Shown here piece after piece: positions 35,477-59,056 of a stretch of 64,000 nt of DNA. Every line of letters starts with the position of its first letter. Position 1 is the stretch's first letter. Source of the DNA: Takakia lepidozioides (lineage: Eukaryota; Plantae; Bryophyta); contig CM060731.1 in the NCBI GenBank assembly GCA_030704615.1, positions 44,950,001 through 45,014,000 on the forward strand, given 5' to 3'. Both the position numbers and the translations under genes were made by a program. The notes under the pieces were generated by a model, which did not search any database, had not been told where the DNA came from, and saw nothing but the letters and a program-made list of their open reading frames with translations.

Positions 35477-36486
35477 TGTTAGAGGACTGTCTGGGACTTA
35501 GACACTTATACGGGATCTGTGGGGTACCCTTAATTTTTGCACAGACTGAGACCAACAGGAGCCTTAGGGGTGACAGCAGCGCACTTTAGGGGGGGGTGAC
35601 ACAGCCCGTCACAGCCAACACAGCCGACACAGCCAGACACAGTCAACACAGCCCGTCACAGCCAACACAGCCGACACAGCCAGACACAGTCAACACAGCT
35701 CGTCACAGCTGACACAGCCCATCACAGCCGACACAGCCCGTCACAGCCCGTCACAGTTTCACACAGCCAGTCACAGCTTGACACAGCTGTCACGACCATA
35801 GGGAACGGATAGCCGGACAGGGAACGACTGTGGGGAACAACACCTGCGAATGGAACATGTTAGTTCACGGACAACGGTTAGTGAGGGAAACGGTTAGAAC
35901 AACGGGTAGGAAGATAAAGCTAGAAGCAAGGACTGAAAAATGGATCATTTTTGGAGCACTTCGGGGGGGGGAATCACTGCTGGAAGGAGTGGGAAGGAGC
36001 ACTTCTTGGAGAGACTTCGGACATCACTGGGGGAAAGGAGGAGAGAGTGTATCTCTGAGCAGAAAGATGGAGAGCACGGAGTAGGAGGAGGATCTGTTGA
36101 TGCTTAATGAATGCAGGCAGTAGAATTGTAATGTAGAGCATATTAGAGACTCCATGGCTTCAGCCTGATACTTGATAGATATTAATCTGATACACACCTC
36201 ATACTCACACTGTGTAGAGAGATCTGAGTGAAGCTGTGGAATGAATTGATGAGTTGATGGAATCCGATAAATTGATGAAGCAAACTGATACTTAATTACC
36301 AGCAGTAAGGTAACTAGCTAACATGAATGCGGGAAGGAAACAATAGGAAACACCCCCATGATACACTAGCTGTAGGTCATGACTGATTGTTCTGAGCGGG
36401 CTGAGTACTTAGAGATTTCCAACTCTTCTATCTTGGAGTTTCCGCCTCGGATAGCGAAGGGATGGGTGAGTAAAAGCTGCGCGACA
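35477..36486 (+). repeat. 5' LTR (1,010 bp) with an internal ~10-bp CACAGCC-type tandem array (~35597-35790)
   Basis: TG...CA termini; near-identical to the reverse complement of 44954-45057 joined to 58094-59051. Confidence 0.96.
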
Positions 36487-37175: not shown

Positions 37176-37830
37176 TTGGGAGAGAGGAATAGACATAGGG
37201 AATCATCTGGACCTCTCACACCACTAAGATCAAAGAGTACATCACCCATACCGGAAGAACTAGAGTTGGATGCCACTCCTTCTGTTTCTTTGCAAGTAAG
37301 ATTAAGGGAATTGGTACAGGAAGAAGATCAATCACGAGGTGAAAGATCTGAGGTACATCCCTGGATAAAAGATTTGACAGAAATCTTTGATAAGAGTTGG
37401 CATGGAACACCAAAAGCAAGAACTCCAGTTTCTGAAGCGGAAGGTGAAGAAGGAGGAGAGGATGTGGCAGAGCCAACGGAGAGTTCAGACTCTCCAACAC
37501 CATTACAGTTGAGTTACATGAGTAAAGAAGAAACCCAAGGGCAGAACTTGGAGGATGAAAACAGAGAGAAGAAATTGGAAGAGGAAGAATATGAAGAAGT
37601 AGACCCAACAGCTGAGGTTGAGACTACAACCAGGACATCCCAACCCGTTGGACCTGGATCAAGTGGAGCACTTGGATCACAGGCCAACGAAGGTGTCGGC
37701 TCAGGGGGATCAGGCGGGCTGCCTGGATCAAGCTCTGGGGGGACAGGGAGTGTGGGAAGTAGTGCAACTGAAGCTGGGAATACTGTGAATATCGTGGGGC
37801 CAGAAGCAGGGAGTGCTCAAGGGCCACCAC
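37176..37830 (+). pseudogene. N-terminal low-complexity part of gag, cut by the inversion breakpoint
   Basis: Acidic and Gly/Ser-rich ORF ending GPEAGSAQGPP. Similar sequence (TTTTTGPEGPAPA) resumes on the minus strand at 54893. Confidence 0.75.
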
Positions 37831-38028
37831 TTGGTGGGGCAAATCACACACAGCAGATTGATGCTTGTGTGAAGGGTTTTCTAGAGGATATCTGGAAAAC
37901 CCGGATTAATTCCTTATACGATGGTAAGTCTTACTACCAACGTCAGCCCTGTTCCTTTTGTTCCCACTGAAACTGGGCGCGGGGTCAATGGCCACAAGGC
38001 TACGGCAAACAACGTCTTATGAGTACAA
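37831..38028 (+). mobile_element. 3' end of the LINE whose body lies at 54894-57392 (-)
   Basis: [30 protein letters not shown] plus the 3' UTR GGGGTCAATGGCCACAAGGCTACGGCAAACAACGTCTTATGAGTACA, which matches the intronic copies. The TSD TCTCATCCTTAT follows at 38029-38040. Confidence 0.92.
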
Positions 38029-38547
38029 TCTCATCCTTATCATCCCTCGCCTTTTGGAAAATTCCAGCCATAATTGAAGGGCAATTGGTTGTTGTACTTA
38101 ACTGCACGAATGTTCCCCTTTCTGTTGGAATGAGCCGCACGTCCTTTCCATGCTGACATACCCTTTCTTCTTCCTGCAGGATCCTTTGCCCAGCCCTGTT
38201 ATTTCTATCATTTGTGCCATCCTCTTGGCGTTTCCACAGCCTCCCCTCATTGCCAGTGAAGTGTTTCTTTCTCTTCCCTTTGTCTTTAAAGACACTCCAA
38301 CTGTTAGCTGCAGTACCCTTCGCTGATTTCTTATTGCCTTTGACCTCATGTATGTTTTCAATCATGTTTGAAGGGTGATCACTTGCTGCCATATGCATGA
38401 CTGTGTCCTTGACTGCTTCTCTTGTCTCAGTATGATGTTTAATTGTTGTCATGTCAGGCTGTGCTCAGCTGCACCGTGGTGTCTTCAAATGGATCAATTT
38501 TTCAGACACGGTCTTGCCAACTGAATGATGCAGGTTCACTTGGGAGA

Positions 38548-39183
38548 GTGCACTCCCCCTTTCCTCTATGCTTCTGTTTCATGTTCAAAGGTAGGCTTCC
38601 TTCCCTGAGTTTAAATTTCAGTCTAGTGCCGAGAGTGGGTGGACCCTTGAGGTCATCCAAGATGTCATCCCCCATGTCACTGACTAGAAACAAGTTCACG
38701 GACGTTTTATGCCTAACTTCATTTTCATCAGACAATCTCATGGCAATAGACATGGCTTTGGACACTACAACCTCTAAGTCTGATTTATCCAGCAGGGTCA
38801 AGACTTGCGGATCCAGGTCCAGGTCCTTGAGAATCTCTTCTACTCTGGCCTTGGGAAAACACCTTTTGATCTCAGTCCAGAAAGTGGTCAGAGGTACCAA
38901 TATCAGTTCTGTCGATCAACACATTGGCACACTGGGGAACAAATTTTTGTCCATTATGATATAGTCCACAATGGAACGTTCCCCAGTTTGGGATTTCTCA
39001 CGAGTCCACTGCACTTGGTCACCTCTTGTCTTGTTAATCAAGGTCAAAAGCTGAAGCTCTTCCAGACAGTTAATTAACCGTCTGCCATTAGAATTCAGCT
39101 CGTCCTCACCAGAAGACCCAATGATATCGTCCTGATGGAGCCCTTTGCCCACTTGGGCATTGAAGTCACCCTACAATAGCACC
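38548..39183 (-). mobile_element. Second, internally deleted fragment of the same LINE family (endonuclease piece joined to the C-terminal piece)
   Basis: GDFNAQVGKGLHQDDIIG...SIVDYII is joined near 38850 to RVEEILKDLDLDPQVLTLLDKS...LGTRLKFKLREGSLPLN, highly similar to 55075-55370 and 56660-56740. Confidence 0.9.
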
Positions 39184-40243
39184 ACAGAGATGAAGAGAAG
39201 CTTTGGAATGAGACACTTTTCTGACCCCAGTCGATGGTGGGACAATGTGGGTGGATGGTCAACTGGAAACAGCAGCGGCAACAGCGCAATTGATAAAGCA
39301 AGGCACTGCTGATGAAAGGTACCTTCTTCAACGTATTTCAGCCTGAGGGCACCTTCTGGTTTGATCTGTTTCAGCCTGTTTTTCCCTCTCATCAGACTCA
39401 GCCCTGAAGCATATGTATTGAATTTTGTAAGTTAGCTCGTTGGGTGGATCTGCGGTGCTCTGGAGTGACTTTGCAAGTTGCTGCCGAGGTGGTAGCATGA
39501 CAGTACCTAAAAAAAGATAATAGATAGAACAAGGGACTGCTAATGAAGGTACCTTCTTCAACACATTTCAGCCTGTTTTTCCCTATTATCAGAGTCGTCC
39601 CTAGATTTCCAGATGGCGGATTCCAAGCTCCAGATTACTTATGATTCCATGTGGAATGATAGCTACAAGAAACCTGGATGGGTAGATGGTCAACTGGAAG
39701 CCACAATAGTAGCTGCAGAGGCATGATGTACGCATTGTTAGTGTGGAGGGAGGGGTAGCTGTTGATGCAGGGAGAGGATCGTGGGTGCAAAATCATCCAA
39801 GAGGGCCAGATTTGGAGCAAGGAACAGCGCTGGCAGGAGTTCTATAAATTTGATCCACAGCGGTGGGACAATATTGTCAACAAGGTGAGCTTTCTTCATG
39901 CAACATCGTAGGGAGTTTGACAGAACTTTGTATTTAAATATGTTAGTGTGGAGGGAGGGCTAGCCGCTGATGCAAGGATGGACTGTGGGTTCAGGATCAC
40001 CCAAGAGGGCTACCAGCAGTGGAAGTAGCAGCATTTGGTCAATAGCAGCAGCAAAAATTAACAACATCAAACTCATCAATCAGGTACTTGCTTCTGTATA
40101 CATTTCATCCTCTTATGAACGTAGTTCCTACTTGGACAGCCTATAGGGTTGTATAAAACAGTTCCAACCCGGGTGCTTTGTTATTGGTCTATCAAGGTCT
40201 GATTTGAAATGTTTTCATTTTGCATTTTGCAGGTGAACTCATC

Positions 40244-43200
40244 ATGGAAGATGAGTTGGAAGTAAAAGTCCTGCTTGTTGGAGGAGATGCATCACCAAAC
40301 AGGCTTGGTTCTGTGTTCACTATGCAAGGTGTCACATACAAATGCATCCGAGCAGAAATTATAGGTGATGAGCTTGTCTCAGCAAAATTTCATTTCCTTT
40401 CCATGGGGGGTAGTGTCCTTTCAGCCAAGCAAGAAGAGAGGATGGTTCTGAAAGGGGATACTGTACACATTAAGATTTCAGACCAAAATGATGGGGACCA
40501 AGGATTGAAAAGACCTCTATCTTCCAGTGGGTCTACGATCTTGCATGAGGACAGACCAGGCGAGGACCCGGCACCAGTGTCTACCAAGATGAGGATGGAC
40601 CCTGATACACCCTTTGCTTGGCGATGGTGGAAATGAAGACCATGCACATGAGCATGCACTTCAGCAGAGATCTGGTAGATTGTGCAGCTCGTTGGCTACA
40701 TCCAACGATATTCAAAAATGGCAGAAAGAGATTAGAGCCGTTGAAAGGCAAATCTCTGCAGAAGGACGATGTGACAAGTTTGAGCTGATGACAAAGGATC
40801 AACAAGGACAAGCAATGTTCCACATATGGTGTGTTGAGTGTGAGGATGTTTATGCACGGTCTGGGAAAAACAAACCATATGATGCATGTGCAAACTTTAT
40901 GAGATCTCATTTGAGGAGTGAGGGGCATCGCATAGCCTATGAGAGGCGTCATGGGAAGGGTTCATCACAATGTGTCATCAGCCCTGTAAATGCAGATGAA
41001 GCATTAGACGCAAAGAAGAACAGGGTGAAGGAGGCATTAGAGGAAGTCACTCGGTTTTGTGAGGACAATCCTGGAAACAGATTTGAGATTGTGGAAGCCA
41101 CAATTGGAGACTATTCGTAGTTGGGTTCCATAAGGATTAGGTGCCCACTGGATTCGAAGTGGCTACTCTTGTTTCCAAGGACAGGTTCTTTGCAATTTTC
41201 TTTGACAGAGCATGTGAAAGGAAAAACTCATGTCGATGCAAAGATTTGCCAGAAGGTTGGAAGTAGTGAAGGACCTTGCAAAAAGAGAGGAAGGCCTCCA
41301 AAGCCTATGATTGCCAAAGATGTAAAGCAACGGGATCTAAGCTCTTTCTTGGTCAGTCAACCTGTGTTGCCGTCCCCACCACTTGACAATCCAATTGTGG
41401 CATCAACAATGGGAGCATCCTCGTCACAAACTCCATATGCTTGTGTTGACGCTGCCCAACGGGGAGATCTGATCGAGGATTGACAATTACAGCAAAGGTC
41501 CCAATGCAACAAAGGAAGAGACAGTTTGTGTTGGGGCCTATGGGATGAATGGTGGGAGTACAACCAGCAGAGAATAAGTCTGAAACCATTCCTTCAAGAT
41601 AGCAAGGGAGGAAAGAAGTGGTATGTCGAGCCGTTGACAAATGCAACCATCACTCTAAACAATCAAGAGCATAAGGTTGTTGGTACGTTTCGGCACGCGG
41701 ATTGTTTTAGAGTGTCATTGGATGGGGAGCCATTTCCAAACTTGAGATGTTCAGCATGTTCTTCCATTCCCTTGGAAAATGACTTCAGAATGAGGGTATA
41801 TAGAGAAAGAGGTACCATGGAATGTAGAGGGGAGAGAGATACTGGCAAGGAAGAAGGTTGTCATATCTTGGAAATGCGGAGATTGTCAAACAAGTTTACA
41901 AAAACAGACAGGAGTTGAGGCAGTTGAGGTTCAAATTGTGGGAGGCCAGGACCAAAGTGGCATTATTGTTTGTGCGATGTAGGAGTTTGAAGGAGTCTGG
42001 GATTGAGGCAATTGAAAGAGGAGATGTTCTCAAATTTTGTCATGATATTGTTGATGCACATAGGAGGGGGGATTTTGAAGGAAAAGAAAGTTTGTGGGAT
42101 TTTCTTGTTGATATGGGCAAGAATATTGACAGGTCTCCACAAGGGAAGAGGTATGGTACTAGCACAAATAATGTTTGAGACTGTGCAGCTTTGGGGGGGT
42201 CCGAGATTGCATCATTTTTTGGCTTCAAATGTGGGGGGTCCTTCTATTGATACTACAAGACGGTCTTTGAGGAAAGGTTTGAAGTATAGAGCGGGAGAAA
42301 CGGATGATATATTTCAGCATGTGGCTGGAATTTACAGAGATGTGATGGAAGATGCAAATATTCCATTGGGAAGCATCCCAGTGATGGTGGCCGAAGATGA
42401 AATTGTTGTGAAGCGATTGGTACGTTGGATTGCTAGGGATGACACCCTTCTCGGGTTTTGTGGGCTTCAAGACAACCATGTATGTATTTCAAATTTTGTG
42501 GTGCAAGTGGGAGAAGGGGAATCAGGGTACCAACATATTGTGGAGGCATTCAAAAACAATGTGGTTGCCCATTATGCTAGAGTGTTGATAGCAAATCCTC
42601 TACATGTACGGTTACCTCGATTGGTATTGGTAATCCAGCTCACTTGCAATAGATTTGACAACAATTTTGTGAGATCACAATGGGAAGTGGTGAGACAGTT
42701 GTGGGACAAATATGTGAGGGACGTGGTTGGGCCTATAATTGGGCATGCTTCAGACGGAGATAGTAGGAGGAGAAAAGTGATGTTAGAAGATTATGCCAAT
42801 GGGGCTGGAAATAGATTTTGCATCCCTTGGGAAGGATGGTTGTTTACAGGTCGAGTGTGCAACGGGGGAGATATATACGGACTCCATGATCAGGACTTCA
42901 TCCACAATGGGAAAAAATTGGTAAATCCCTTGGACAGTGCATCACGGACTTTGGTGTTGGGTGATGAGGTTGCTACATTGAATCATGTGTTATTGGTCTA
43001 CCATTCATTTTCAGTGGACAAGCATGGACTTCAGGAATGTGATATCAAAAGAGAAGATCGACAGAATTGGGCAGCAGCTCAACGACTGGCATCTCGGAAG
43101 GTGCAAGCTTGTTTGAGGGAGTTACAATCAACTGTGAATCATCGAAGAGAGATGACCAAAGGTACTGAAATTTACCTATATATCATTTCATGCTACATCG

Positions 43201-44650
43201 ACATTTTTTTGTCTCCTCACATGTCATTGTGTGAGAGGGTACAATCTGCTGTGAAGGTATCATTTTTTTTCAGATTGTGGAAGTTGTGGCTATTCCAGCA
43301 CAAGGTGTATAATCTGAAATCCTTCTTCATTAGCAGGGAAGCATACTTGGATTTACAAATTTCATGCCACTACGTGGTTCTACTTATCAAATTGTTCAAG
43401 GATAAGTTTAATCATGTGCAAGTTCCTTTGAGCCTTGTTGGTTCAGATGTGTGTGAAATATTCTTCAACAAAGTGGGAGGTATGTCACGGAATGAGAGGA
43501 CATATGACGGGTGTGATTTGATTGAGAGTGCGGGAGCATTAACACGCATATCCGAGTTCGAGGCGAATCCAAAAGGACCCAAGTTCTCAAGAGCTCACAA
43601 GAAACAAGAACACATATGGTCTTCTTTGGAGAAGAAGCCAGGTATCCCCCTTGCTGATTTGTCCGACTTTCTACTGTCCAATCGGATGATTACATTGTGG
43701 AGGCTTTGAAAACTGGATTTCTAGAAGCGCAACTTTTATGCCATAAACTTGGGATGAAACCAAACAAAGCAACAAACTTGGATTGGTGGAATGAGCCATG
43801 GACAATTGAGAGACAAATGGAGGTCGAGCTATTCAAAAGCATGGAAGAGGAGGGTGATGATGTCAATGCCATAGATTCTATTTGTCCTCTTAATGCAGAC
43901 ACACATATTCAAAATGAGGTCGTGGAAGATGAATTGGTGTGCGGGCCTTCGAATTCAATGGAGGATGTTTTGAGCCAACCTTTGGATGATCATGCGGAAG
44001 AGGTACTTGTTCAAAGTGAATTGAGACATACTCTGGATGCTGTCATTGATGAGTTTGAACAAGAGAAAGATGGATCGAAGGCAGTGGTTCCATTTGTCAA
44101 AGTAGACGGGAAGACCATATTCAAAAGCACTTTGGTTAGCCAACTCAATGGCAACCTCTCTATCCAAGGATAGATTGACACGAGTAAGAAGTGCATCGAT
44201 GTTGTTTTGCCGAGAAAACAAACCAACTACCAGCAACAAAGCCACGAGCTTGGGATTGGGTTCGGATTGTGCTGTATTTTTTGTTGATGGGGAGACTGCG
44301 ATCCAAACTACAAACAGGAAAGGTAGACCAGGGAAAACCTGCAGAGGAGCAACCAAAGGCACTTGGTATTTGGGCAGGGTTCAAAGAATGCGGAAGAAAA
44401 TCAATAAGCGGTTTGTAGAATGTAGGGATTCTGTTGATTTATTGGAGCGTCCTTCTCATATGGAGATTGGGTTAGCATGGTACCAAAAATTCGAGGAGGG
44501 GTCTATACGTACGATTTGACGGATAACATGATGGTTGATTTGGATTCCATTATCGCGTTAGCATGTTTAAAGTACAATGTCAAGTCAAACACATATGTTC
44601 TTGATGCAAATGACCGAAAAGTCTTTGACAACTTTATCAAAGGCAAATAA
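40244..44650 (+). pseudogene. P-element/THAP9-like DDE transposase, ~1,470 codons, with several stops and frameshifts
   Basis: Motifs in P-family order: VAEDEIVVK (D at 42396), HASDGDS (D at 42753), DQDFIHNGKKLVN (DxxH..K...N at 42894) and GSDVCEIFFNKV (E at 43455). The N-terminus has CVEC...HLRSEGH and CPLD...HVKGKTH finger-like motifs and the AT-hook KKRGRPPK. An acceptor TTTTGCAG precedes the ATG at 40244, and the frame ends FDNFIKGK* at 44650. Confidence 0.8.
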
Positions 44651-44953
44651 TTTTTTTAATTAATTTGTTAGATTTTATTATGTTTTAAATGAATAAATTC
44701 GATATAATATAAAAACATACATATACATATTGGAGGGTTATTTTTAATGATGAAAAATGAGAATATACGTACAGAAGGGGGTACTTTTCGAAAATTGTAA
44801 ATTTTTGTATATTTACAGGAGGGGATTTTATAATCTTCAAAAAGTATGTACAGAGGGGGTATAAATTATCCAAGGACCCATATACAGGGGGTTTTTTTAT
44901 TAGGCGACGAACGCACGTGATACGCACAGTTTATAAAGAGTGCACCCCCCGGG

Positions 44954-45057
44954 GCTACTGTCACCCCTAAGGCTCCTGTTGGTCTCAGTCTGTGCAAAAA
45001 TTAAGGGTACCCCATAGATCCTGTATAAGTGTCTAAGTCCCAGACAGTCCTCTAACA
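44954..45057 (-). repeat. First 104 bp of the Gypsy 3' LTR (inverted)
   Basis: The reverse complement reads TGTTAGAGGACTGTCTGGGAC...GGGGTGACAGTAGC and matches 35477-35580 with three substitutions. Confidence 0.96.
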
Positions 45058-45060
45058 TTA

Positions 45061-45074
45061 CCCCTTCCCCTCTC
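45061..45074 (-). promoter_or_regulatory. Polypurine tract
   Basis: GAGAGGGGAAGGGG on the minus strand, 3 nt before the TG of the 3' LTR. Confidence 0.9.
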
Positions 45075-45447
45075 AAAAAGCCGTGTCCTCACGGTTTACT
45101 GATTGGGATTAGCAATCCTTTGTGAGCGAGCACCTTTCTGACGTTGAGAGTTTCGTGGCGGACTGTGTGTACGAGCCCGAGGTCTGTCACTGGTTGACGG
45201 AGATGATTGAACACTACCTGGATATGTGAGGCCCTCTGGAGGCTGATATCAAGGTAACCTTTCAAGCATATGAGACCCCCGTCGCTTCTTTTCTGCCATC
45301 TGAATTGCATAGTCTTCTCCCATGTCAAAAGAGTCCGCTGAAGAAACAGTTGTATCAGAATCCTCATCGCCTCTCAGGTGTTTTAATTGTCGAACTTTTT
45401 GTGGAGTCCTCTGGGGCATACAATGTTGTCCTACCATGTCTGGAAGT

Positions 45448-48400
45448 TTATATTTTAAAACTTGCTGTAAACGCTGAATGGCAAATTGGTGAAGACCCTG
45501 AGCTCCTTTCTGTCCAGGTGAGTGGGGTACCAATGACTTGTGAATTGTGCAAGTATTTCCATGCCACATGTCCCTTATAGAAAATATCATTAATGCTGAA
45601 TTTCTGTGTTGACAAATTGTTGCAGGCCACATGAAACCATGAACGAATTTGAGAATCCTTTTGTATCATAACTTTTGCCTCATATAAGTACATATGAGGT
45701 GGCACTGAAGGTAAGACCCAATGATCCCCACTGGAATAACTCACAAAGCGCGATTGCATCTTGTGCTGCTCAATGTGATAACGTACCAGAAAACAAGCAG
45801 CGTAGTATAACCCGCATCCCATGACAATACTTGCTACCTCCTTGGTCTTGGTATAAATGAATCCATGTACAACTTGGAAAGCAATTAATTCCTTCAACAT
45901 GGTACCTGCCTCATGCCAGTACTGTGCAAAGTGATGATCCTCAACTGGTCGATTGTTCAGAAGAACTTTAGTCCTAGTTGCCACTGGCAGCCAAATGCGC
46001 ATGATTTGATAGTAATGTGCGAATGACTGCGAAGGACTAAATTCTTTCCAAACCAAATCCAACACAATGGGAATTTGGTTGAAGGGCATAATCATAGCCC
46101 TATTGTACTCCCTTGCAGCTGGAGTTTTAGGTGGGTTAAAAGCAGCATTGCCCCATACGTCAGGCTGTGGTGGTTGTGGCGTGGCTTTAGTAACAACAGG
46201 GTCAGCTACTGGCACAGTAACTTGTTGTGGTGTTGGTGGCACTGGCTCTTGTATCATTAGCATCTCCTGCACCTGCTGTGAAGAAGATAGAAAAGCCAAA
46301 GTTCTGGCTTGTAAATAAGAAGTCATTAGCTGTTCCTCAGGTATATAGACTCTTTTGTCAATATCTGAAGTTAGGTCCTCCACTTGAGTCTGCAGTCCGT
46401 CTACATCCTCCTGTAACTCCGCTATCCTACTATAGACATTGTCTATAGTAGTTGTGGCAATGTCCTGCACTTGCAATCTGAGCTCATTCATCTCGCTTTG
46501 GGTGAGCTTTCGTGGTGTTTTGCCCTCCACTGGCCCTTGTGCTAACCAGACCTGCATAAGGTGGTTATCCACCAAGTTGCTTGTGGTTCCTCTGAGAGTG
46601 TGCTCCTCTCTGAGTTTGTACACATCTAACTGCTGTTGTAAAGCCTCCATGCACTTCGCATGAGGTTCAACCAAATTCGCATAAGCAACAAGCAGATTAT
46701 TGGCTTCCTTCCAAGCCTTGTTAGTGACCGAGATTTCATTTCTATTGGCCATGACCGTTTGTTGCAACTCCAGGATGTGCTTCTCTTGGTCAGCTTCAAC
46801 CTGCCTGTATTGCTTGAAAGTATCCTCATTGCGACAGATTGTATTCTTCATATTGACAATGAGTTTCATTTGCTCAACATTCTCTTCTTCTGCCTTCGTA
46901 CATTTTTCCGCTTGACTGTTTATTTCTTTTGTAGATTGGTCAAGCATAGTTGTGAGTGTAGCACATTGTATGGCCATCCTGTCATGCACTGTCTGCAACT
47001 CCATATGTAGTGCATTCACTTCTTGCAACTTGCTTTCATGCTTCACCTGCATTTGGTATAGCTGTTGCTTATGTGCTTCGTGCAAATGTTCTTGTGCGAG
47101 GCCTGCCTCAATCAATTGTTCCTTGGCCAATTGCAAAGCCGCTTCTGTACTATCCAAGTTTTGCTGCATTTTGAGAGTGACCTCTTCATCGACCTTGTTT
47201 GCACACTCTGTGGCAAGTCGAGCCTCAAACTCTTGCCTGAGTTCCTCCCTCAAAGCTGCCAATTGAGTAGTGGGAACATGGGATTTGACATAAGTACCCA
47301 ACAAATTCAGTGTCCTGCTTATGGAACTCATAAGCATAGCCTGTTGAGGGTCATCATGGTCAGCTTGCTGCTGTTCTCCCTGATCCTCAACAGTGTGATG
47401 CCTTATGAACCATTCAGGCCATTGCCCCACCAGATTTTCTTCCTGAACCACTTCATCCGTCACTGGTGCTGCAGTGTCTTGGCATTCTACCTGTGGTACC
47501 TCCGTCCATGTGTGTGTATTATATGTGCCGCAGGGTTTCCCTTGGACAATCGTTGCACCTCCGGAATCACTGTGTCCTTGACCATACCAGAATATTCATA
47601 GAGAAGGTCCCCTTCTCTATTTCTGCCACCACCTATTCTGTAGTGGGAATATCTAACCCTTCTTTTTCTAAATCAATTATTTCGGGTTGAACTGCATGGA
47701 CAACTTGTGGTAACCTTGTGACAAGCCGATCCTCTGGCTGTGATGGCTGTGATACTGAAGTAACTTGCTCTTCCCTCTGTGAAGGTCCTGCTTCCAGTAA
47801 TAGCAGTTCTCTGTGCTGCTGTGCCCCTTCCTGCACAAAAACTTGGGAAACATTATCATGCGGATTCCGTGAAGCCAGTGGATCCGCCACTACAGTCTTT
47901 CCCCGCCTCTGTCTCTTATTCTTGGGTTGCCCTGCCAGTCCACCCTCACTGTGTGAAGAGCCTTGCTCTTCCATTGCAGTGGTTTCTGGCTCAAACACTC
48001 CCATCTCCTTTCTTTCTCGCGCATCAAGTATGCCAGAATCAAGAATTATTTGAGCAATGATTGGGCCAGACACTATGATAGGAGACTTTGCGGCAGTACC
48101 CTGTAATCTTTTCATCTCCTCTACCAGTGCGTTGTACATTATGTCCGCCCATTCTACCTCTTCTCCTCTCAGGGCTTTGAGTATTTCCTCTGTGAAGGAT
48201 CTGCTCAAATACTGTTGGTTCTGTTTCATGGCAAACAGAACGTTCAATACCTGGCCTACCTCCTTTAGCCCTGGGTACACGGCCTTGGTACAAGCATAAC
48301 CCTAAGTTTTAAAGAAACTCCCTTCTTGGAATAAGTCCCCTATTTGCAGTCTTGCCCTATGCTCCTCCACATGCACCTGGCCTGCTGGCAATCGAAACAA

Positions 48401-48682
48401 TTGCTGGAGGTATAGGGGAGTAATTACTAATTCAACTCCCTTCACCGTTGTTGCTCCTGTCCTTGGCTCAAAGTTCTGCAAGAATTGTAACATGTACTGT
48501 CTATGGTGCAATGTCCAATCTTTGCTTTGCAATCCTTGCAATCTCAGCTCCTTCAGTATCTGTATCGCCTGTGGGGTAGCAATCGTTTGTTTCTGCAGAA
48601 TTGTGGTGCTCTTCACCCTGATTTCCTCCATTCCTCTCACTCTCTTCATTCTAGACCCACAGAAATGTTTTGGCTGTAACAA
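45448..48682 (-). pseudogene. Large extra ORF between pol and the 3' LTR (plant-transposon-protein-like N-terminus plus long coiled coil), broken into 126, 215 and 671 aa pieces
   Basis: 48302..48682 and 47633..48280 share a frame across one TAG and contain VKGVELVITPLYLQQLFRLPAG and GEEVEWADIMYNALVEEM, which resemble Athila-type extra-ORF domains. 45448..47463 is Q/E/L-rich and heptad-like. All are in the same sense as pol. Confidence 0.65.
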
Positions 48683-49359
48683 CTAAAGAAATGCCTGTAG
48701 TGCACAAAGCATAAACGTATGGTTGCCACAAAAAGCTATGGGTAATTTCTTGTAAGCCTCCGGGGCTTGCAAGCATCACTCAAGAGAAAAGATCCGCTCT
48801 GTTGTTTCGTCCCTATGCCACTGCGTAAGTAATATTGCGAGCGTATAGTCTGTTACTTCCTCCATAGTTTCAAAGCTATAGCATTGATGGTTTGTCTCGT
48901 CGAGACGCCCGTTACTTAGAACGACGCCGACTCTTGCGCTTAATTTCCCTCCAATTTCTTGATCCCTTCTCTGGCTTTCTATTGGCTGTAACCGCTGTGA
49001 CTGGATTTTAGATTTAATTTTCTTTAGTGGACTTTCCCTGCTGGACTGTCCACTAGGATAACACATGTGACAAGAATTTCGCTTTTCTGTACTTGCTGTT
49101 TGTTCTGTTGCCCCTTTTCTGTATTCATTAATGGGCCCGCCATTCATCCAATTTGACGCACTGATTAGGTATTTTGACGGCCATTCTTGTCCCCTTTCTT
49201 GATGACATCCGTTCTTGCACTTCTTTCTCAGTTGTGTGTGGCGCCTTGACTTCCACGTGTCCCTTTGTAAACTGGCTTCCGTCCTTTCTTCCGCCGGCCA
49301 TTTCACTGAAGTTATCCTGCGTCCATCTGTCACTGATTCTATGGATTGTGTAACCCTAG

Positions 49360-49530
49360 TAGGCTGTGTTAAGCTGTGATAGGCTGTGTCATACTGTGGT
49401 ATGCCATGATAGGCTGTGATACACTGTGGTAAGCTGTGATACACTGTGGTAAGCTGTGATAGGCTGTGATGCACTGTGGTAGGTCGTGATAGGCTGTGTT
49501 GCGCCGTGCTGGGCTGTGATAGGCTGTGTC
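49360..49530. repeat. ~10-bp tandem array (GGCTGTGATA / CACTGTGGTA) downstream of the integrase
   Basis: About 16 CTGTG-core units; the reverse complement shares the CACAG core of the LTR array. Confidence 0.9.
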
Positions 49531-49639
49531 TCGCTTGTTCTGCCCGCCCTGGTCATATATGCTCGGCCTAGCGACAAGTGCTCCATACTCCGTTGGTAAC
49601 ACTGGCGCAGCCCGTGACTGCTTTTGCTTTTCAACATGC

Positions 49640-52600
49640 AAATCATGCTGCAATGGTTTGTCATGGATACCACTATACCTCTTCAACTTATTAGCATTGA
49701 CTCTTTCCAGCATCTCTTTGTTAATGGTTTGTAACATGGCGGTGTTGTTATCATACATCTTTTGTATGACATAAGGTCATTTCCATGGTGATTTAAGCTT
49801 AGAAGCTTTAATCTTTCCCTTCTTCTGCAACCATAGAACCAAATCTCTCGTCTTAAAAGTCTTTAACTTGCCTTCATCAAACTGTTCCTTCCTCTTCATC
49901 TGAATTCTGGTCATATTATCTGCTGCATCAGCACGTACTTCTTCCACATGGTATAATTCATGTTTCCTGACTTTAATGGAATCTTGCAATTCCATTCTCT
50001 TTCCCCATTCCGTTCTCATGGTAGGTAACAGGAATTCCACTGGAAGTAAGGCTTCCATACCATAAACTAATTGGAATGGTGTATACTTAGTGGTGACTTT
50101 ATATGAGGTCCTGTATGACCACAAAGCTGTCAGCAGCTTTGTATCCCAATCCGTTCTGTTTGCATTGACTATCTTAGCCAAGATAGTACATAGTATTTTG
50201 TTGGTAGCCTCTGCCTGCCCATTACCCTGTGGGTAATATGTTGTACTCTTCCTATGCACAATCATGAACTCTTTAGTCAACAATTCAATGGTCTCATTGA
50301 TGAAGTGACTTCCTTGATCACTGATAAATTCCAAGGGACAGCCAATCGTGTAAGTATGTTCTCATACAGAAACCTTGCTGTGGACTTGGCTGTGTTGTCC
50401 CTCAAAGCTTTAGCTTCCACCCACTTCGTAGTATAATCAGTGGCTGTAATTATGTACCTGTTCTGTGTATTCTTGGCTGGTGGGTTAATTGGTCCAACAA
50501 AGTCTAGTCCCCATTTCTGAAATGGTTCCGTAGGCATTGTAGGATGCAAAGACATTTTCCCAGATCTCTGCAAAGGTCCCAGCCTCTGACATTCATCACA
50601 GCTCTGACAATACTTGTGTACATCTTTGAACAAAGTAGGCCACCAGTAACCTGCATGTAGTATTTTCCTGCTGGTAGTCTCTTCTCCAAAATGACCTCCT
50701 GCCACTCCTTTATGAACTTCCTCCAAAACTTTATTAACTTCATGGTGGTATAAGCATCGCTTCAGCACTCCATCTGGTCCTAGCTTATACATTCTGCTCC
50801 CTACCATAGTGTAAGGTAGAGCCTTGATAGCAATTCTCTTTCTCTGCTCCCTTCCATAACTTGGTGGGCACTGACCATGAGCAAGGTAGTATCTGATTGG
50901 CCACTGCCAATCTAACCATTCATCTGCACTTCCTTGCACCTCCATTACAAATAAACTCGCATCAGGTAACTGATCCTCTACTCCTGTGGCGGCCTCTCCT
51001 GTTGTTAGTCGTGACAAATGATCTGCCACAAGATGCAAACGGCCAGGCTTGTAAACAACTTCGAACTCAAACTCATGCAAGATTATTAACCACCTCGCTA
51101 TCCTTCCACTTATCAAAGGTTTGTTCACCAGATATATCAGAGCCTGGTGATCCACATAAAACATAAACTTTCTTCCCAATAGGTAATGCCTGAATTTCTT
51201 GATTGCATAAATCATTGCCAGTGCTTCTCTTTCAGTTGTGCTATAATTCCTTTCAGCACTGTTCATCAACCTGCTAGCATAGTACACAGGTGAATCTATA
51301 TTTCCTGTAACATTCTGGGCTAACACTGCTCCTAGTGCTTCTCCAGAAGCATCACAGTGAACATGAAATATTTTCTGCCAGTGAGGACTAATCAGCACAG
51401 GTGTAGTTGTTACTGACAATGTAAGTTCCTCAAAAGCCTGTTGACATTCAGGTGTCCATGCAAACACTTCATCTTTCTTCAGAAGTTTGCTCAATGGTGC
51501 TGCTATCTGTGCATACCGTCTGACAAATCTTCTGTAATAACTGGTTTGTCTAAGGAATCTCCTTAGACTCTTAACATTCACTGGTGGTGGAGAGGCTTTA
51601 ATGGCCTCTGTTTTCCTAGGATCCACAAGAAGTCCCCTCTTACACACAATGTGTCCCAGAAGCACCCCTGAGTTCACACAGAAAGTACACTTCTCTGGAT
51701 TCAGGCCCAGACCTCTCATCCTGCATCTGGCCAAGCATAACTCCAATTTATGCAAGTGCTCATTCTTAGAGCTGTACACAGTGAAATCATCCAGATACTC
51801 ATGAAAAGATTCACTTATCACTCTCTGAAAGGTCGCTGGTGCATTACAAAGTCTAAAGGGCATGACTTTGTATGCATAAGCACCCCAGTCTGTGATGAAA
51901 GCTGTTTTTCCTTGGTCTCCTTCTGCCACTTGCACTTGATTATAACCACTGAAGCCATCCATGAATGAGTACATCTCATGGCCTGCCACAGTGTCTAATA
52001 CTGCTTCTGTGAATGGCAAAGGAAATGATCTTTCTTCGTACAAGCATTCAGCTTCTTGTAGTTCACACAAACTCTTAGTTTACCATTCTTCTTGGGAACT
52101 ATCACAATGGGTGACAACCAAGTTGTATACTCTATTGGGTATATAAACTTAGCCTCAGCCAACTTCTTGATCTCTTCTCCAACCTTCTGTGCGTAGTTGG
52201 GATTCATTCTGTACCTTGCCTGCTTGATTGGTACTGACCCCGGTTCCAGTTCAATCTTATGCTGACAGATTTCAGGTGGTATCCCTTTTAAATCCTCATA
52301 GCTCCAAGCAAATACATCTCTGTATTTGATGAACAAACTCTTAGCTTCTTCAAAGAATTCTGGCTTCAAATCAGCTCCTACCTTCACCATCCTCGGTTCC
52401 TCTTTAGTTCCCACATTCACTTCCCTCACTTGCTCATCAGCTGTGATTGTCCAACCAGTCACCACTTCATCCTGTAAACTCACAGTGGCTGGTTCCTCTA
52501 GGATTTCCATTTCTCCTTCTTTTTCTTCATAGAAATGTGATGGGTAACTGCTGGTTTCCTCTTCAATCGGTGTTGTTGACACTACACCACAGCAGATACC

Positions 52601-54893
52601 CCTTAAACAACTTAGGCCTTCCAGCCGCATCTCTGCAACCTGCTCCCACTCTGGGTGTGCAGCAAACAGGGTAGCTTCCTGCTCCTCATCCAGTCCTCCT
52701 CTCCAGTCATACTCTCTGACTCCTCGAGGTCTTCTCGTAGCAGGTAATCTACTAGATTTCTTTGTGGTAATTTGTATCTCGTGTATCCCATTATGCACGG
52801 TTAGTAACTGAGAATTCTAGTCATGGAATACCCTGGCCTGTTTCAGCCACGGACGTCCCAATAATAAGGAGTAAGCCTCCATGACTTCATCCATCTTCAA
52901 CACAGTTACTGTGATCATAAAGATCATCTTCTGTATCTGTATCTTAACTCCTCTTATTAATCCCAATGGCTGTACACTTCTTTGATCTGCCATTCTTAAT
53001 GTAAATGGGGCTGGTTTCATGTTACTTAGACCAAGCTTCTTCCTTAATTGGTCTGTCATGATATTTACTCCTGAACCTCCATCTATAAGTACATCAGTTA
53101 GTTCTGTGCTTCCAATTCTCAATTGGATTACTGGTATAGAATCATCAAAGTCCATGACTGTTTCTCGCCCTTCCGGCTTCACATTATAACTGGTCACCTT
53201 GCTGTTCAGGTCTGTGTTCCCTATCTCCTGGGCAATTCGATTGATTGCTTGATACAGCCTGTGCCTACAATAAGGTGCCACAGCCAATAGCTGTCCAATG
53301 GTAATCTCTGCTTTGGTCTGGCATATTACTTCAGCCAAAGTCTCTTCATTACTTTGCATGTCTCTTTCTTCCTTTCATCCTCACTCACTTCTTCTTCTCT
53401 ATCAGAATCAGAGGAATCTGCCACAGGAATATCAGTACTCTTCTGCATTTCCCTTATGGTATCTGCCACTTCCTTGTGCAGTTCCTTCTCATATCTCCAA
53501 GCCTCATCATATTCCGGCATATCACTGCCACCTTCATTATCATCTTCTTCCTCTACTACTGGAGGTATTAGTTTGGCTTTTACTTCTTGTTACTATCATT
53601 GTACTTACTTCTGGTACAACACATGGCCTAACCATGTGAGCTGCCACCACTGGGCCCTCATTCACAGGAGCTTTCATCTCATTCTGGTGTCTAATCCAGA
53701 ATGAACAGGCTGCCTTGCGATGTCCTGGCTGATTACAATAATAACATAGTTCTTCACCATTGGGTCCTCGCCCTTGGTCTGCTCTTGGATTATTTCTGTA
53801 ATCCTGATTCCCAGGCTGGTAATTCCCCCTTGGATTACCCTGATAGTTGCCTCTGGAATTTCCTTGGTAATTCCCTCTTGAATTACCTCTCCCTTCCATG
53901 CCATTGTTATAACCACCAGACCTACCATAGTGGTCCTGATCATTGTTTCTTCTTGGCTGGGCTGCACCTGATGCACCCTTACTTGCCTAGGTTCTCTTGC
54001 AACTGTCCTTCTGTTGTAGTAACAATTCTCAGTAGAATGGTTATCCATTTTACAGATAGTACAGTGTTTCTCCTTCATGTGGCATTCTGTGGTGGTATGG
54101 CCTTCATTCTGGCACTTTGCACACCATACACCATTCCTCCAATGTGTTGCAGCCTCTGTGGCATACTTCTTCAAGATTTCTTCCAATCTTTTCTCATAGT
54201 TATCCCTCTTCAACTTCTCCTTTATCTTACTCTTCTTTTTTAGTTCTTGCTCTTCTTCTTCATCTGACTCATCCTCAGAGTCCTCATCATCCCTTTTCTC
54301 TCTCCTGAGCATCCCCAATTGCTCAATTCTGTTTGCAGTTTCAAATGCCTCCTCCACTGTATTATGGGATAACATATCCACTTTCTTTTGCAACTCTGGT
54401 CTTAGTCCACTCACAAACCAAGTCTTCTGTAACCCTGGTGCTGGTACTGCAGCCAGCTTTTTCATCATCAATTCCATCTTTTCCATATACTCCTCAACAG
54501 TTTCATGCTTCTTTTGCTTTAACTGTTGTAAACTTCCATACACTTCATCCTCAGTTTTACTTGTCCTGAATCTATTTCGGAATGCTGTATTCAAGCCATT
54601 CCAGGTTAGGAAATGATTATCAAGGAATCTTGCATACCATTCACTTGCTTTCTTTATAAGTGAACAAGGAAACAATCTCATCTTGACATCATCGCCATTC
54701 TCATTGTTCACTATACACATGTGCTCAAATTGGCTAATGTGTACATCGGGATCCCCTTTTCCTGAATATATTGGAAAAGGTGGTTTTGCCCGTGTTGGTT
54801 GTAACGCCATCTGTGGCCCTACTTTCTGCCCACTGACAGGTGCTGGCACTCTTGCTGGTGCTGGTCCTTCTGGACCTGTTGTTGTTGTGGTGG
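49640..54893 (-). pseudogene. Gypsy gag-pol (gag core, three CCHC knuckles, PR, RT, RNase H, integrase) with several frameshifts and stops
   Basis: gag: PIYSGKGDPDVHISQFE and knuckles CAKCQNEGHTTTEC, CTICKMDNHSTENC, CYYCNQPGHRKAAC. PR: LIDGGSG. RT: [44 protein letters not shown]: [26 protein letters not shown]: H-H-C-C zinc site, [26 protein letters not shown]. Confidence 0.96.
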
Positions 54894-57392
54894 ATTAGGC
54901 CTCAGGAGGGCCTGGGCTTTTGGCTCAGCCTCGAGACTTTCAAAGTTGGTAAACAGGGGTACAGGCACAATTCCCTTGATAGAATTGAAGAGAGCCTCTC
55001 TTTGGTGAGAGAACCCGGACAGCGTATCAGAAAATGAATACTGTCTTCAGATTGCCCACACAACGGACAATTGCACTCTCCCTTTCCTCTCTGCTTCTGT
55101 TTGCTGTTCAAAGGTAGGCTTCCTGCCCTGAGTTTAAATTTCAGTCTAGTGCCGAGAGTGGGTAGACCCTTGAGGTCATCCAAGATGTCCACCCCCATGT
55201 CACTGACTGGAAACAAGTTCAGGGAAGTTCTCTGCCTAACTTCATTTTCATTAGACAATCTCATGGCAACAGACATGGCCTCAGACACTACAGCCTCTAA
55301 GGCAGATTTATCCAGCAGGGTCAAGACTTGCGGATCCAGGTCCAGGTCCTTGAGAATCTTTTCTACTCTCTTCTGCCAGGACTTAGCCTGTTTGACAGGG
55401 CGGTCCTGTTTCCAAGATATAGAGTCAATCAACTTAGGATATCTGGTGTTGGGCATATGTTGCAGCTGACCCCACCATCTGACCTTGAATTCATCTCGTC
55501 GGGAGCTTAAGGATGGAATGCCAAACTCACCCCAAACAGCCACATTGGCTGTTTTGGAGCATGCTGACATACACTCCTTAAGCACCCCCACTTGAATGGA
55601 TTCTAGAGACTTAGCCTGGTTGGAGTTATCAACCCATATAGCAGATCCGTACTCCAAGGCAGGTCTAATAACGCGACAAAGCATGGTTTTCTTAACCTCA
55701 GAGATGACCCCTCTGCAGTGGAAAAATTTAGTGAGCCCCAGAGCTTTGCCCTTGCCAGTTCGAACAACTTTCCGGATATGTGCATCCCAATTACAATTGG
55801 AGGAAAACTCAACACCCAGGTAAGTGTAGGAAGGGAGGACCGGGATCTCTTGGCTACCCCACTGCCACTTAAGATTACTTCCTCCCTCTCCTCTGTCGTT
55901 GAATGCTACCACTGCATATTTGCTGACATTAGCCTCTAGCCCCCAAAGATCAAAGTATCTCTTCGCGCAATTAATAAACTCCTGAGTGTGATGCCACGGT
56001 AGTTCCCCGGTTCTTCTCTGTCACCCTTCTTGTATAGACTGACAATGACCCCCTGTCGCCAGCGAAAGGGGATCATTTCAGTCTTCCAGATAAGGTTAAA
56101 GAGGAGAACTAGGGCCTCTATCATGGGATCGCCACCGTGCTTGATAAGCTCGTTGACAATACCATCAGGTCCACCAGCTTTATATCCATTTAAATGTTCA
56201 ATTGCTTCCACAATCTCAGAAGAACTAATGGGCGCGTTATAAGCCATTGAAATATACTCCAGTTCATCAGGGCTGTTTTGAATCATAGGAACAATTTTTC
56301 CAACTGTGTCCCTCCATTCAGCGGAAGACCCCTCACTGTTAGACCTAGAAGTTCTGCCAAGGATACTGTAGTGATTTTCAAAGGTTTTGACAATGTCAAC
56401 CGATGAAGTCACCACTGCACCTTTAGTAGTCTTCAGCGCTTGTACTTGTTGACCGTTTTTAGGCTTGTACAACGTTGAAGGGCCAACCATAATTTCTTGT
56501 CATTACCACCATGGTGGTTTGAGTTTATTTCACTGTATAACTTATCCCAGTATAATTTCTTCTGAGACCTAACAAGCTGATTGATATCTTTCCGGAGCTG
56601 ATAGTACCTCGCCCACAATTCTCTGTTGGTTTTCAAATTGCAGCACTCTTTATAGAGGGCTCGTCCTCACCAAAAGGCCCAATGATATCGTCCTGATGGA
56701 GCCCTTTGCCCACCCGGGCATTGAAGTCACCCAATAGCACTACCTGACCTTTGGCAAGGAACGAAGCACAGTCCAGCTTTACATCTTCGAAGGCTTTGTC
56801 TGCGTCAGCACTAAGGGTCCCCTCTGTGGGCATGTAAACACAACCCACAAAGAGGTCCTTCGTACTCATGCCGCCCTTCAGATTCAGTTTTAGCCAGATA
56901 CTATGTTCGTACCTCAAACCCTTCTTGATAATTTCACAATTATCAAACAAGAAATCACATTAAGAATCCAACCCCTTTTTGACCGCGTTTGGCAAAGGCT
57001 GCCTTGAGAGTACACATCCTACCTGCCCATTTATAACCATTGACATCTCCAACCAGTTTATCCGAAGTTTCCCATGTTTCTTGCCCAGCACAGATATGAA
57101 TATCATTAGTCCGAAGGACTTGTCCCACTTCGAGTTGTTTCCTTTGGTTAGTAAGCCCTGAGAAGTTGAAAGTGGCCAGCCGCAAGCCAGCCCTTTGCAT
57201 GTGAATTGTTTGTCGTCTAGGTAGCTTGGGATTGCTCCTGGACGCCCAACCGTTCTGCAAAGGGGGGACAGTTACCCCATGTGTAGATTTTGCTCGTCTT
57301 GTGTAAACTCTTGAGTACCAAATCCTTCAGATTCAGGACGTTCAGGTTCTGTACACTTAGGGGCATCTTGTCCCTTTGGCTGTTTGGATTCA
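54894..57392 (-). mobile_element. RTE/RTEX-like LINE body (APE endonuclease, partly deleted RT, C-terminal CCHC)
   Basis: LATFNFSGL, ICAGQETW, VGCVYMP, LLGDFNARVG, KAGGPDGI, LYKKGDREEPGNYRGITL, YTYLGV, IRPALEYGSAIW and [18 protein letters not shown]. The RT core after GITL is missing. The TSD copy ATAAGGATGAGA lies at 57393-57404. Confidence 0.9.
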
Positions 57393-58093
57393 ATAAGGAT
57401 GAGAATAGGCCTGATACAGTGAGTACAACCATTGTGTCACGCCAATCATTATTAGGAAAGAAAATAGGCCTAATGTGCTCATTATCTCTGATGACTGGGA
57501 ATCTTGATGCCCATGTCCTCCTGTCATTGCTACACAACAATCCGCCACCACACCCGCATATCATCACCGATCAGCCCAGGCCTGCCCCACATTCCCGCGC
57601 ACTTACTTCATCCCTTTCGATTCCTGCCCTCTACATACATCACAACCTCAAACCTTCTCCCAAGTCAGTGCCCTCACCACATTCTGGTGCCCTCACCACA
57701 TTGTCCTACCATGCCCTGTGGAGAGGAGGGGAGAGGAGAGGAGGAAAAAGAGAAAGCCCGCGGAAGGGAAGGCGAACGCGGGAGAGGAGGAGAAAGAAAA
57801 GAGAAAGCCGTGGGAGGTCAGGGGAGAAAGATCGTGGAGCGAAAAAAAAAAAAAAAAAAACAAACATACAAAACGACGATTCCACGATTCGATCCCGGGA
57901 TGCATCGCGGCGGAATCGCCATTCTTACCACTACACTATCCCTAAAAACTCAACAACCCCCTCCTGTAAAATTATATTTAAGGTGTTTTAAACCCCCCTC
58001 TGTATGTATAATGTTGTACATGGGGGGGTTTAAAATACCCCCTCCTGTGCACGCACGTGGCTAGTACATTTAATGAGGAGTACACCCCCCGGG
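57393..58093 (-). mobile_element. 5' arm and TIR of the P-like DNA transposon
   Basis: The terminus ...GAGTACACCCCCCGGG at 58093 is followed by the TSD ACAGCAGC (58094-58101). CCCCCT(C)CTGT subterminal repeats lie at 57955-58050. Confidence 0.88.
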
Positions 58094-59051
58094 ACAGCAG
58101 CGCACTTTAGGGGGGGGGGGGGTGACACAACCCGTCACAGCCAACACAGCCAACACAGCCGACACAGCCAGACACAGTCAACACAGCCCGTCACAGCCAA
58201 CATAGCCGACACAGCCAGACACAGTCAACACAGCCCGTCACAGCCAACACAGCCGACACAGCCGACACAGCCAGACACAGTCAACACAGCCGACACAACC
58301 CGTCACAGCCCGTCACAGTTTCACACAGCCAGTCACAGCTTGACACAACTGTCACGACCATAGGGAACGGATAGCCGGACAGGGAACGACTGTGGGGAAC
58401 AACACCTGCGAATGGAACATGTTAGTTCACGGACGACGGTTAGTGAGGGAAACGGTTAGAACAACGGGTAGGAAGATAAAGCTAGAAGCAAGGACTGAAA
58501 AGGGGATCATTTTTGGAGCACTTCGGGGGGGGGGAATCACTGCTGGAAGGAGTGGGAAGGAGCACTTCTTGGAGAGACTTCGGACATCACTGGGGGAAAG
58601 GAGGAGAGAGTGTATCTCTGAGCAGAAAGATGGAGAGCACGGAGTAGGAGGAGGATCTGTTGATGCTTAATGAATGCAGGCAGTAGAATTGTAATGTAGA
58701 GCATATTAGAGACTCCATGGCTTCAGCCTGATACTTGATAGATATTAATCTGATACACACCTCATACTCACACTGTGTAGAGAGATCTGAGTGAAGCTGT
58801 GGAATGAATTGATGAGTTGATGGAATCCGATAAATTGATGAAGCAAACTGATACTTAATTACCAGCAGTAAGGTAACTAGCTAACATGAATGCGGGAAGG
58901 AAAACAAATAGGAAACACCCCCATGATACACTAGCTGTAGGTCATGACTGATTGTTCTGAGCGGGCTGAGTACTTAGAGATTTCCAACTCTTCTATCTTG
59001 GAGTTTCCGCCTCGGATAGCGAAGGGATGGGTGAGTAAAAGCCGCGCGACA
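58094..59051 (+). repeat. Remainder of the Gypsy 3' LTR
   Basis: It matches 35573-36486 with few substitutions and a longer CACAGCC array, and ends GCGCGACA before the TSD ACTCA. Confidence 0.96.
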
Positions 59052-59056
59052 ACTCA

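Follow-up and report, generated by a model that had tools for sequence, protein, structure and literature searches.

The P element is the textbook animal transposon, and hAT is the usual plant superfamily with 8-bp target-site duplications and BED-type fingers. Here we analysed a 64-kb stretch of the Takakia lepidozioides genome (GenBank assembly GCA_030704615.1, contig CM060731.1, positions 44,950,001 to 45,014,000; hereafter the window, in whose coordinates all positions are given, on the plus strand unless stated otherwise), which contains a DNA transposon with a transposase gene of about 1,470 codons (40244-44650, +; ATG at 40244, TAA at 44648). With high confidence, we consider this element an autonomous cut-and-paste transposon from a lineage that is related to P elements and lacks THAP, and our verdict on the lineage is that it has been mobile recently. 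A first-pass annotation made from the sequence had pointed in this direction; its observation is partly confirmed, its P-related reading is supported and the architecture it gave to the locus is corrected below.

According to a review, THAP domains are confined to animals, among whose genomes P-like elements are spread (PMC7776569), and a fungal survey reports Repbase P entries only from Pucciniales and Allomyces among fungi (PMC5751038). The RepeatMasker class 'P-Fungi' is listed among the repeats tabulated for rusts, a legume and Daphnia, and land-plant elements of P type are described nowhere in the literature searched. With Drosophila P transposase, THAP9 and zebrafish Pdre2 the window family shares the helix-turn-helix (HTH), the split RNase H core and the helical insertion fold, and it agrees with the P superfamily in the placement of the acidic triad, in a D-x2-H motif after the second Asp, in the 8-bp duplication and in short terminal inverted repeats accompanied by internal subterminal repeats. 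It differs in that two CxxC...H-x5-H modules and an AT hook stand in place of THAP, in protein length (about 1,470 amino acids (aa), roughly twice the 751 aa of P transposase), in termini that read C[C/T]CGGGGGG rather than CA, in being missed by the Pfam P models, and in its hosts, ferns and liverworts.

Catalytic core and N-terminal region

The catalytic core (42060-43709, +), comprising the HTH, the split RNase H fold and the helical insertion domain, was delimited by an AlphaFold2 (AF2) model, by fold matches and by the invariant columns of an alignment of 40 family sequences (A1), from which the residue numbering is taken. D113, E114, S231, G233, H282, K286, G461 and E466 are invariant in A1 and E112, D232, D234, D279 and D463 nearly so, and these columns form the motifs AEDE, SDGD, D-x2-H..KK and SD.CE..F. 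All the motifs that had been claimed for the window open reading frame (ORF) are present on the plus strand, namely AEDE (42390-42401), SDGD (42750-42761), the D-x2-H motif DQDFIHNGKKLVN (42888-42926) and SDVCEIFF (43443-43466). In the model of the core, which has a predicted local distance difference test score (pLDDT) of 91, the first motif lies on RNase H strand 1 and the second just past strand 4, and the last is borne by the helix behind the insertion domain, which is about 150 residues long. In this model the invariant residues occupy the positions of a DDE (Asp-Asp-Glu) triad, and the D of AEDE, the D of SDGD and the E of SDVCEIFF are proposed to be the catalytic residues.

The fold was compared by Foldseek, by VIA-align and by structural and language-model neighbours in the ESM Atlas, a structural check that the first-pass annotation had called for, and the core aligned to the RNase H-fold P transposase. 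In VIA-align, Drosophila P transposase (6p5a_A) matched with Z 27.2 and a root-mean-square deviation of 5.7 over 411 of its 442 modelled residues, including HTH and insertion domain, compared with Z 12.4 for Transib, 10.4 for RAG1 and 9.0 for Hermes; Foldseek likewise ranked 6p5a first (E 1.9e-11), with RAG1 at 2e-4. The fold is therefore specifically P-type, with the next family at less than half the score, and the HTH, the RNase H DDE core and the helical insertion together are nearest to P transposase. In the ESM Atlas the nearest structural neighbours are unnamed Basidiomycota clusters with a template modelling (TM) score of 0.91, followed by rotifer THAP9-like, echinoderm and arthropod P transposase and chordate THAP9 clusters (TM 0.66-0.80), and the language-model features agree with structure, with the Basidiomycota proteins at 0.96.

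Ahead of the core, two zinc-finger-like CxxC...H-x5-H modules (40830-41231, +) can be recognized by residue pattern, the second of which has lost a Cys in the window copy, and they are followed by an AT hook, RGRP, at 41286 (+). The N-terminal 600 residues of six intact relatives conserve both modules, the AT hook, a Cys/His-rich block and the P-type HTH. By pattern, the spacing of the fingers appears BED-like.

Termini and target-site duplication

The paired termini claimed in the first-pass annotation are real. Both begin CCCGGGGGGTG[C/T]ACTC, share 15 of their first 16 bases when read inward, and carry a CACGTGCGT box at positions 35-43; the plus-strand sequence of one, ...GAGTGCACCCCCCGGG, stops at 44953 and that of the other, ...GAGTACACCCCCCGGG, at 58093. 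The 5' terminus (end B, 58051-58093, minus strand; inward CCCGGGGGGTGTACTC...) lies upstream of the transposase gene in the restored element and is homologous to the 5' end of an intact relative, L006, and the 3' terminus (end A, 44911-44953, minus strand; inward CCCGGGGGGTGCACTC...) lies 303 bp past the stop codon. Across the 64 kb, over which all chance expectations were computed, CYCGGGGGG and CACGTGCGT occur at two sites each, in both cases at the element ends (0.36 and 0.07 expected, respectively). ACAGRRGGGG occurs seven times against 0.5 expected, with six copies within 185 bp of the termini, so that the subterminal repeats reported at both ends are confirmed as three copies each (end A, 44771-44859, +; end B, 57958-58048, -). 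Since in the restored element the copies of both ends fall on one strand, these repeats are direct and not inverted.

One copy of the target-site duplication, ACAGCAGC, lies at 58094-58101 (+), and the other, ACAGTAGC, with one transition, at 44954-44961 (-, reverse complement), where it is inverted because of the 17-kb inversion described below. The empty target site is preserved in the intact 5' long terminal repeat (LTR) of the Ty3/gypsy element into which the transposon inserted, where ACAGCAGC occurs once (35573-35580, +) in the context ...GTG ACAGCAGC GCA.... For comparison with public reads, contigs of four runs were placed on 40000-45900, of which X2 and X5 come from two DNA studies and X6 and X7 are RNA by a tool's guess; uninterrupted LTR contigs in these runs (11 in X2, 3 in X5) leave the match exactly at 44953/44954 and run on as LTR. 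The empty site in the 5' LTR and these break points make both the 8-bp duplication and the element boundary firm, and the proof by empty site that the first-pass annotation had offered extends to many LTR copies in the public reads. The element thus combines the 8-bp duplication of the P superfamily with terminal inverted repeats and internal repeats of the P type.

In the mechanism that we propose, the transposase would consist of the two finger-like modules and AT hook at its N-terminus, then the P-type HTH, the DDE core split by the helical insertion, and a long C-terminal tail. The N-terminal modules would bind the CACGTGCG box and/or the ACAGRRGGGG repeats, and the core would cut at the C[C/T]CGGGGGG termini and then join them to target DNA with an 8-bp stagger.

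Several smaller observations concern the ends and the insertion site. Right after the insertion site the two LTRs differ in a poly-G tract (8 G at 35589-35596, 13 G at 58110-58122), and a short CACAGCC-type tandem repeat has a different number of copies in each (35597-35793 and 58124-58347). Inside end B, at 57860-57950 (-), a tRNA-like A-box/B-box motif is followed by a run of about 21 T and a CT-rich stretch, and L006 has a similar CT-rich stretch at an equal distance from its 5' end; a tRNA reading of this motif found no support from ARAGORN or Rfam. In an X6 contig the terminal 39 bp (44915-44953) are joined, in opposite strand, to the gene at 44480, and in another contig the terminus runs on into unrelated DNA, which could be a self-insertion or a rearranged copy in the former case and a further insertion site in the latter.

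Gene copies, relatives and placement of the lineage

The first-pass annotation had described the ORF as decayed, which holds for the window copy and fails for the copy in public DNA. In the window, the reading frame is broken by six frameshifts (near 40618, 41848, 42165, 43667, 44154-44157 and 44484) and two in-frame stops (TAG at 41118 and TGA at 41481). X2 and X5 hold one gene variant, about 1% from the window and differing mostly by transitions, which has an indel at all six frameshift sites, each sized to keep one frame, and CAG in place of the TAG at 41118; it is therefore free of the six frameshifts and of one of the two stops. Most of these indel sites touch short homopolymers, so that the window frameshifts may be either true decay of another allele or assembly errors. 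The intact relatives (1,423-1,530 aa) are collinear with window positions 40524-44647. A contig of X7 joins the sequence across a 149-nt GT..AG intron in the 5' untranslated region (40084-40232, +), which ends 11 nt before the ATG, and a 1.6-kb contig of X6 runs across 42953-44480; these contigs point to a spliced transcript. The gene of the window element may still supply transposase; public DNA runs with the same organism label hold an unshifted version, and probable RNA runs hold spliced pieces. In DNA run X2 the subterminal 200 bp of end A (44728-44924) are covered about six times as deeply as the gene, and they appear in at least 13 contigs, a pattern that suggests more copies of the ends and non-autonomous derivatives sharing them.

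An exhaustive family search returned 2,056 cluster representatives at a threshold of E<=1e-3, of which 205 remained at E<=1e-30. Relatives with a name were found in a fern (Adiantum nelumboides), two liverworts (Riccia sorocarpa and Calypogeia fissa) and a sea spider (Nymphon), and all of these are filed as hypothetical. Full-length relatives (1,423-1,530 aa) have two CxxC...H-x5-H fingers and no THAP. In a quick tree, a single clade with a Shimodaira-Hasegawa-like approximate likelihood ratio test (SH-aLRT) support of 99 unites all the named plant sequences with the window and with many unnamed ones, the Nymphon group is sister to it, and the window is nearest to L005 and then to the fern group. 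As a short search with midpoint root, few named rows and zero named fungal sequences, this tree does not settle between vertical and horizontal descent.

Three further lineages among the relatives repeat the terminus design seen in the window. L007 (5147-12887) and L008 (5148-12886), both from ENA ERZ25073694 ctg132431, are two 7.74-kb copies that agree at 99.86%, and both hold an intact 1,423-aa ORF, ends CTCGGGGGGG, and a box that reads ACGTGCGAACA at the 5' end and GGTGCGAACA at the 3' end. Their flanks, GCTTTGAG...TGTAAAGG and TGTAAAGG...GCTTTGAG, are swapped as expected after recombination between two inverted copies, and thus reveal two more 8-bp duplications (TGTAAAGG and GCTTTGAG). The copies are inverted and about 43 kb apart, and, given the exchanged duplications, the DNA between them has probably been inverted, either through recombination of one copy with the other or through aberrant transposition. 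In L002 and L004 the end reads CTCGGGGGGTTCACTCC...CACGTGCG and lies in two different flanks; as the contigs L001-L004 lack the 5' end, they yield no duplication test. L006 is 6.3 kb long and structurally intact, with the homologue of end B upstream of its gene and both boxes (CACGTGCGTGCA) in inverted orientation, and its ends begin CCAGGGAG (5') and CAGGGAG (3'), the two terminal bases being ambiguous (L006:6190-6210 and 12520-12540). A match to CCCGGGGGG in L009 has no box and looks like chance.

Several results weigh against the P-related reading. Pfam assigned no family to any of the window ORF pieces or to the full-length relatives, and none of the P models (PF21787, PF21788, PF21789, PF12017 and PF12596) reached threshold, either with the window ORF or with any of six relatives of full length. 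Sub-threshold links in the 40 aligned sequences are weak (PF12017 in 3 and PF21787 in 2, E ~1e-3), and Nymphon P0267 passes PF21787 only through a matching segment that is repeated three times. Searches by sequence against PDB chains gave chance matches only, the 40-sequence family profile matched no P transposase chain among PDB sequences, and Repbase defines membership of the P superfamily by PSI-BLAST convergence. A GTP-binding insertion domain, with GTP as cofactor, counts among the criteria of the P superfamily; the insertion domain of the window family aligns with that of 6p5a and has no PF21788 match. At the N-terminus, neither PF05485 nor any other Pfam family was found at E<=0.1 in the six intact relatives, and no THAP in the window pieces, exactly as the first-pass annotation had read the gene as THAP-less. 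The AF2 model of the two fingers (pLDDT 79) has no fold match, its best Foldseek E being 0.07, and residue patterns are what suggests that the fingers bind DNA. To this list belong the RNA status of X6 and X7, which is a tool's guess, and the flanks of L006, which show an unexplained 5-bp AGATC instead of 8 bp. Because THAP is lacking and sequence profiles are blind to the relationship, we file the element as a P-related THAP-less lineage and not as a canonical P/THAP9 member, and the absence of Pfam P models at threshold on the gene and the full-length relatives fits the distinct lineage that had been postulated.

These profile failures, together with the deviating N-terminus and termini and about 47 extra residues between the first two catalytic residues, could also mean a superfamily of its own, linked to P only through an old common ancestor and comparable in rank with Kolobok or Transib. 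We regard this as unlikely, as it would have to account for the alignment of nearly all modelled P transposase residues, for the same 8-bp duplication, and for rotifer THAP9-like clusters with P Pfam domains that are intermediate by structure (TM 0.80). Membership of either of the two named superfamilies finds no support in the window: the duplication is the 8-bp ACAGCAGC and not the TTAA by which Kolobok is defined (PMC9587614), and Transib and RAG1, which share the general core-plus-insertion layout and give the second-best structure match (Z 10-12 vs 27 for P), differ in the much weaker match, in termini and in the 5-bp duplication of Transib. An affiliation with hAT (Ac, Hermes) would be in keeping with the 8-bp duplication, an RNase H core with insertion domain and the BED-like CxxC...H-x5-H spacing, but is very improbable given a Hermes score of one third of that for P, termini that differ, an E-helix motif and an HTH before the core that are P-like, and, across the window pieces and the six full-length relatives, no match to the dimerisation domain or to other Pfam families of hAT. 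Equally hard to credit is a domesticated host gene that is not part of a mobile element: the single variant in the DNA runs, which looks open and may be transcribed, would suit it, but the gene sits between termini with a target duplication inside a young LTR, the subterminal 200 bp recur in other contigs, and relatives show several insertion sites.

A more serious contender, to which we give a substantial though lesser than even chance, keeps the mechanism and holds that the lineage is already catalogued as a divergent P branch (the Repbase families of rust fungi and Allomyces, or P-Fungi of RepeatMasker), with only the host being new. The nearest ESM Atlas clusters by structure and features are indeed the unnamed Basidiomycota proteins, which also lack Pfam P domains, so that the window lineage may be the plant counterpart of the P-Fungi branch, and both the Pucciniales and Allomyces entries of Repbase and the spread of the P-Fungi class beyond rusts speak for it. 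Against it stand the separate, well-supported clade of plant sequences among the sequences available (in a tree without a named fungal sequence), the filing of all plant proteins of the family as hypothetical and the silence of the literature searched on land-plant P-type elements, and the Repbase families entered this comparison by description rather than by sequence.

Returning to the THAP-less P-related lineage, we tentatively suggest, at close to an even chance, that non-seed land plants (ferns, liverworts) carry an old and still active P-type branch of their own that is absent from current family models, in which another zinc-finger module has replaced THAP and in which the G-rich terminus and the CACGTGCG box have been conserved across lineages about 45-50% identical in the core. 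If so, the P superfamily would be ancient in eukaryotes and apparently lost in seed plants, and a plant-derived P-type transposase would be available for study. The structural result means that a P-type transposase is structurally unmistakable in ferns and liverworts in a family that standard domain models miss, which widens the known host range of the P superfamily and accounts for a group of plant proteins that are at present filed as hypothetical. It further shows that the DNA-binding head is exchangeable while the 8-bp integration geometry stays, and it allows the generality of GTP dependence within the P fold to be tested, in a family whose terminus design is conserved across lineages and which shows signs of recent movement and possible expression.

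Two relatives carry additional domains. P0267 (Nymphon striatum) has a C-terminal YqaJ / viral alkaline exonuclease-like domain, besides its triplicated first core segment, and P0018 has a C-terminal PTM/DIR17-like Tudor domain; either could be a gene-model chimera.

Host retrotransposon, nested repeat and inversion

The first-pass annotation had taken 38029-58101 for a single element. Since both termini lie on one strand, this interval is not one contiguous element, and about 10 kb of Ty3/gypsy gag-pol lies between them. The sequence from 44954 to 54893 is Ty3/gypsy, with an LTR piece, pol and gag. In a self-comparison of the window, the LTR at 35477-36486 reappeared split in two, with the initial 105 bp in inverted orientation at 45058-44954 (97% identity) and the remainder direct at 58093-59051 (94% identity). 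On the minus strand between the LTR pieces lie gag (53674-54849) and the Ty3/gypsy reverse transcriptase-RNase H-integrase region (50277-52070), and a polypurine tract precedes the inverted LTR piece. The host element thus spans 35477-59051 (+), with an intact 5' LTR (35477-36486) and a split 3' LTR (45058-44954, inverted, and 58102-59051), and is one single insertion, flanked by a 5-bp duplication, ACTCA, at 35472-35476 and 59052-59056. Insertion into the LTR of a single gypsy element bounded by its own duplication means that the transposon moved after the gypsy element had arrived, and the claim that it was mobile after the LTR element is hence borne out.

The inverted segment comprises 17,063 bp (37831-54893), with one breakpoint in the gypsy gag and the other in a repeat nested in the transposon. 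The inner boundary is therefore 37831 and not 38029, as had been claimed; breakpoints at 38029 and at about 57.9 kb were dropped for 37831 and 54893 after a base-level check. When 37823 is connected with the reverse complement of 54893, a gag frame of about 620 codons opens again, given a 1-nt offset, and a paralogous repeat at 13700-13900 is collinear and nearly gapless along the sequence made by linking the reverse complement of 54990-54894 to 37831 and beyond. The junctions carry the 7-mer CCACCAC at 37824-37830 and its complement GTGGTGG at 54887-54893, an inverted duplicate that fits a filled-in staggered break in gag or microhomology-mediated joining. Ectopic recombination between two LINE-like (long interspersed nuclear element) pieces was rejected as the cause, as these pieces are direct and the breakpoints share only 7 bp.

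When the inversion is undone, the transposon descends from 58093 to 54894 and continues from 37831 to 44953, about 10.3 kb in total, of which about 6 kb is its own sequence and about 4 kb a nested, endonuclease-bearing LINE-like repeat. This repeat, with remnants of an apurinic/apyrimidinic (AP) endonuclease that give weak Exo_endo_phos matches, occupies 54894 to approximately 57700 (-) in the 5' region of the transposon and continues at 37831-38032 (+), followed by a second piece in opposite orientation from 38033 to about 39331. The analysis shows the order of events, from gypsy through transposon and LINE-like repeat to inversion. The transposon inserted at position 98-105 of the 3' LTR of the young Ty3/gypsy element already present, a LINE-like insertion into its 5' region came next, and the inversion of 37831-54893 then parted the two ends. 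With its ends separated by the inversion, the window copy is no longer excisable as a unit.

Paralogues of the LINE-like repeat lie at 13.6-14.8 kb of the window, where an array (13600-14800) alternates two units, homologues of 37837-38032 and of the reverse complement of 54908-55242, and was the standard against which the inversion junction was judged. The gypsy family of the host element is highly abundant, with about 100 times the depth of the transposase gene in both DNA studies (45000-45900).

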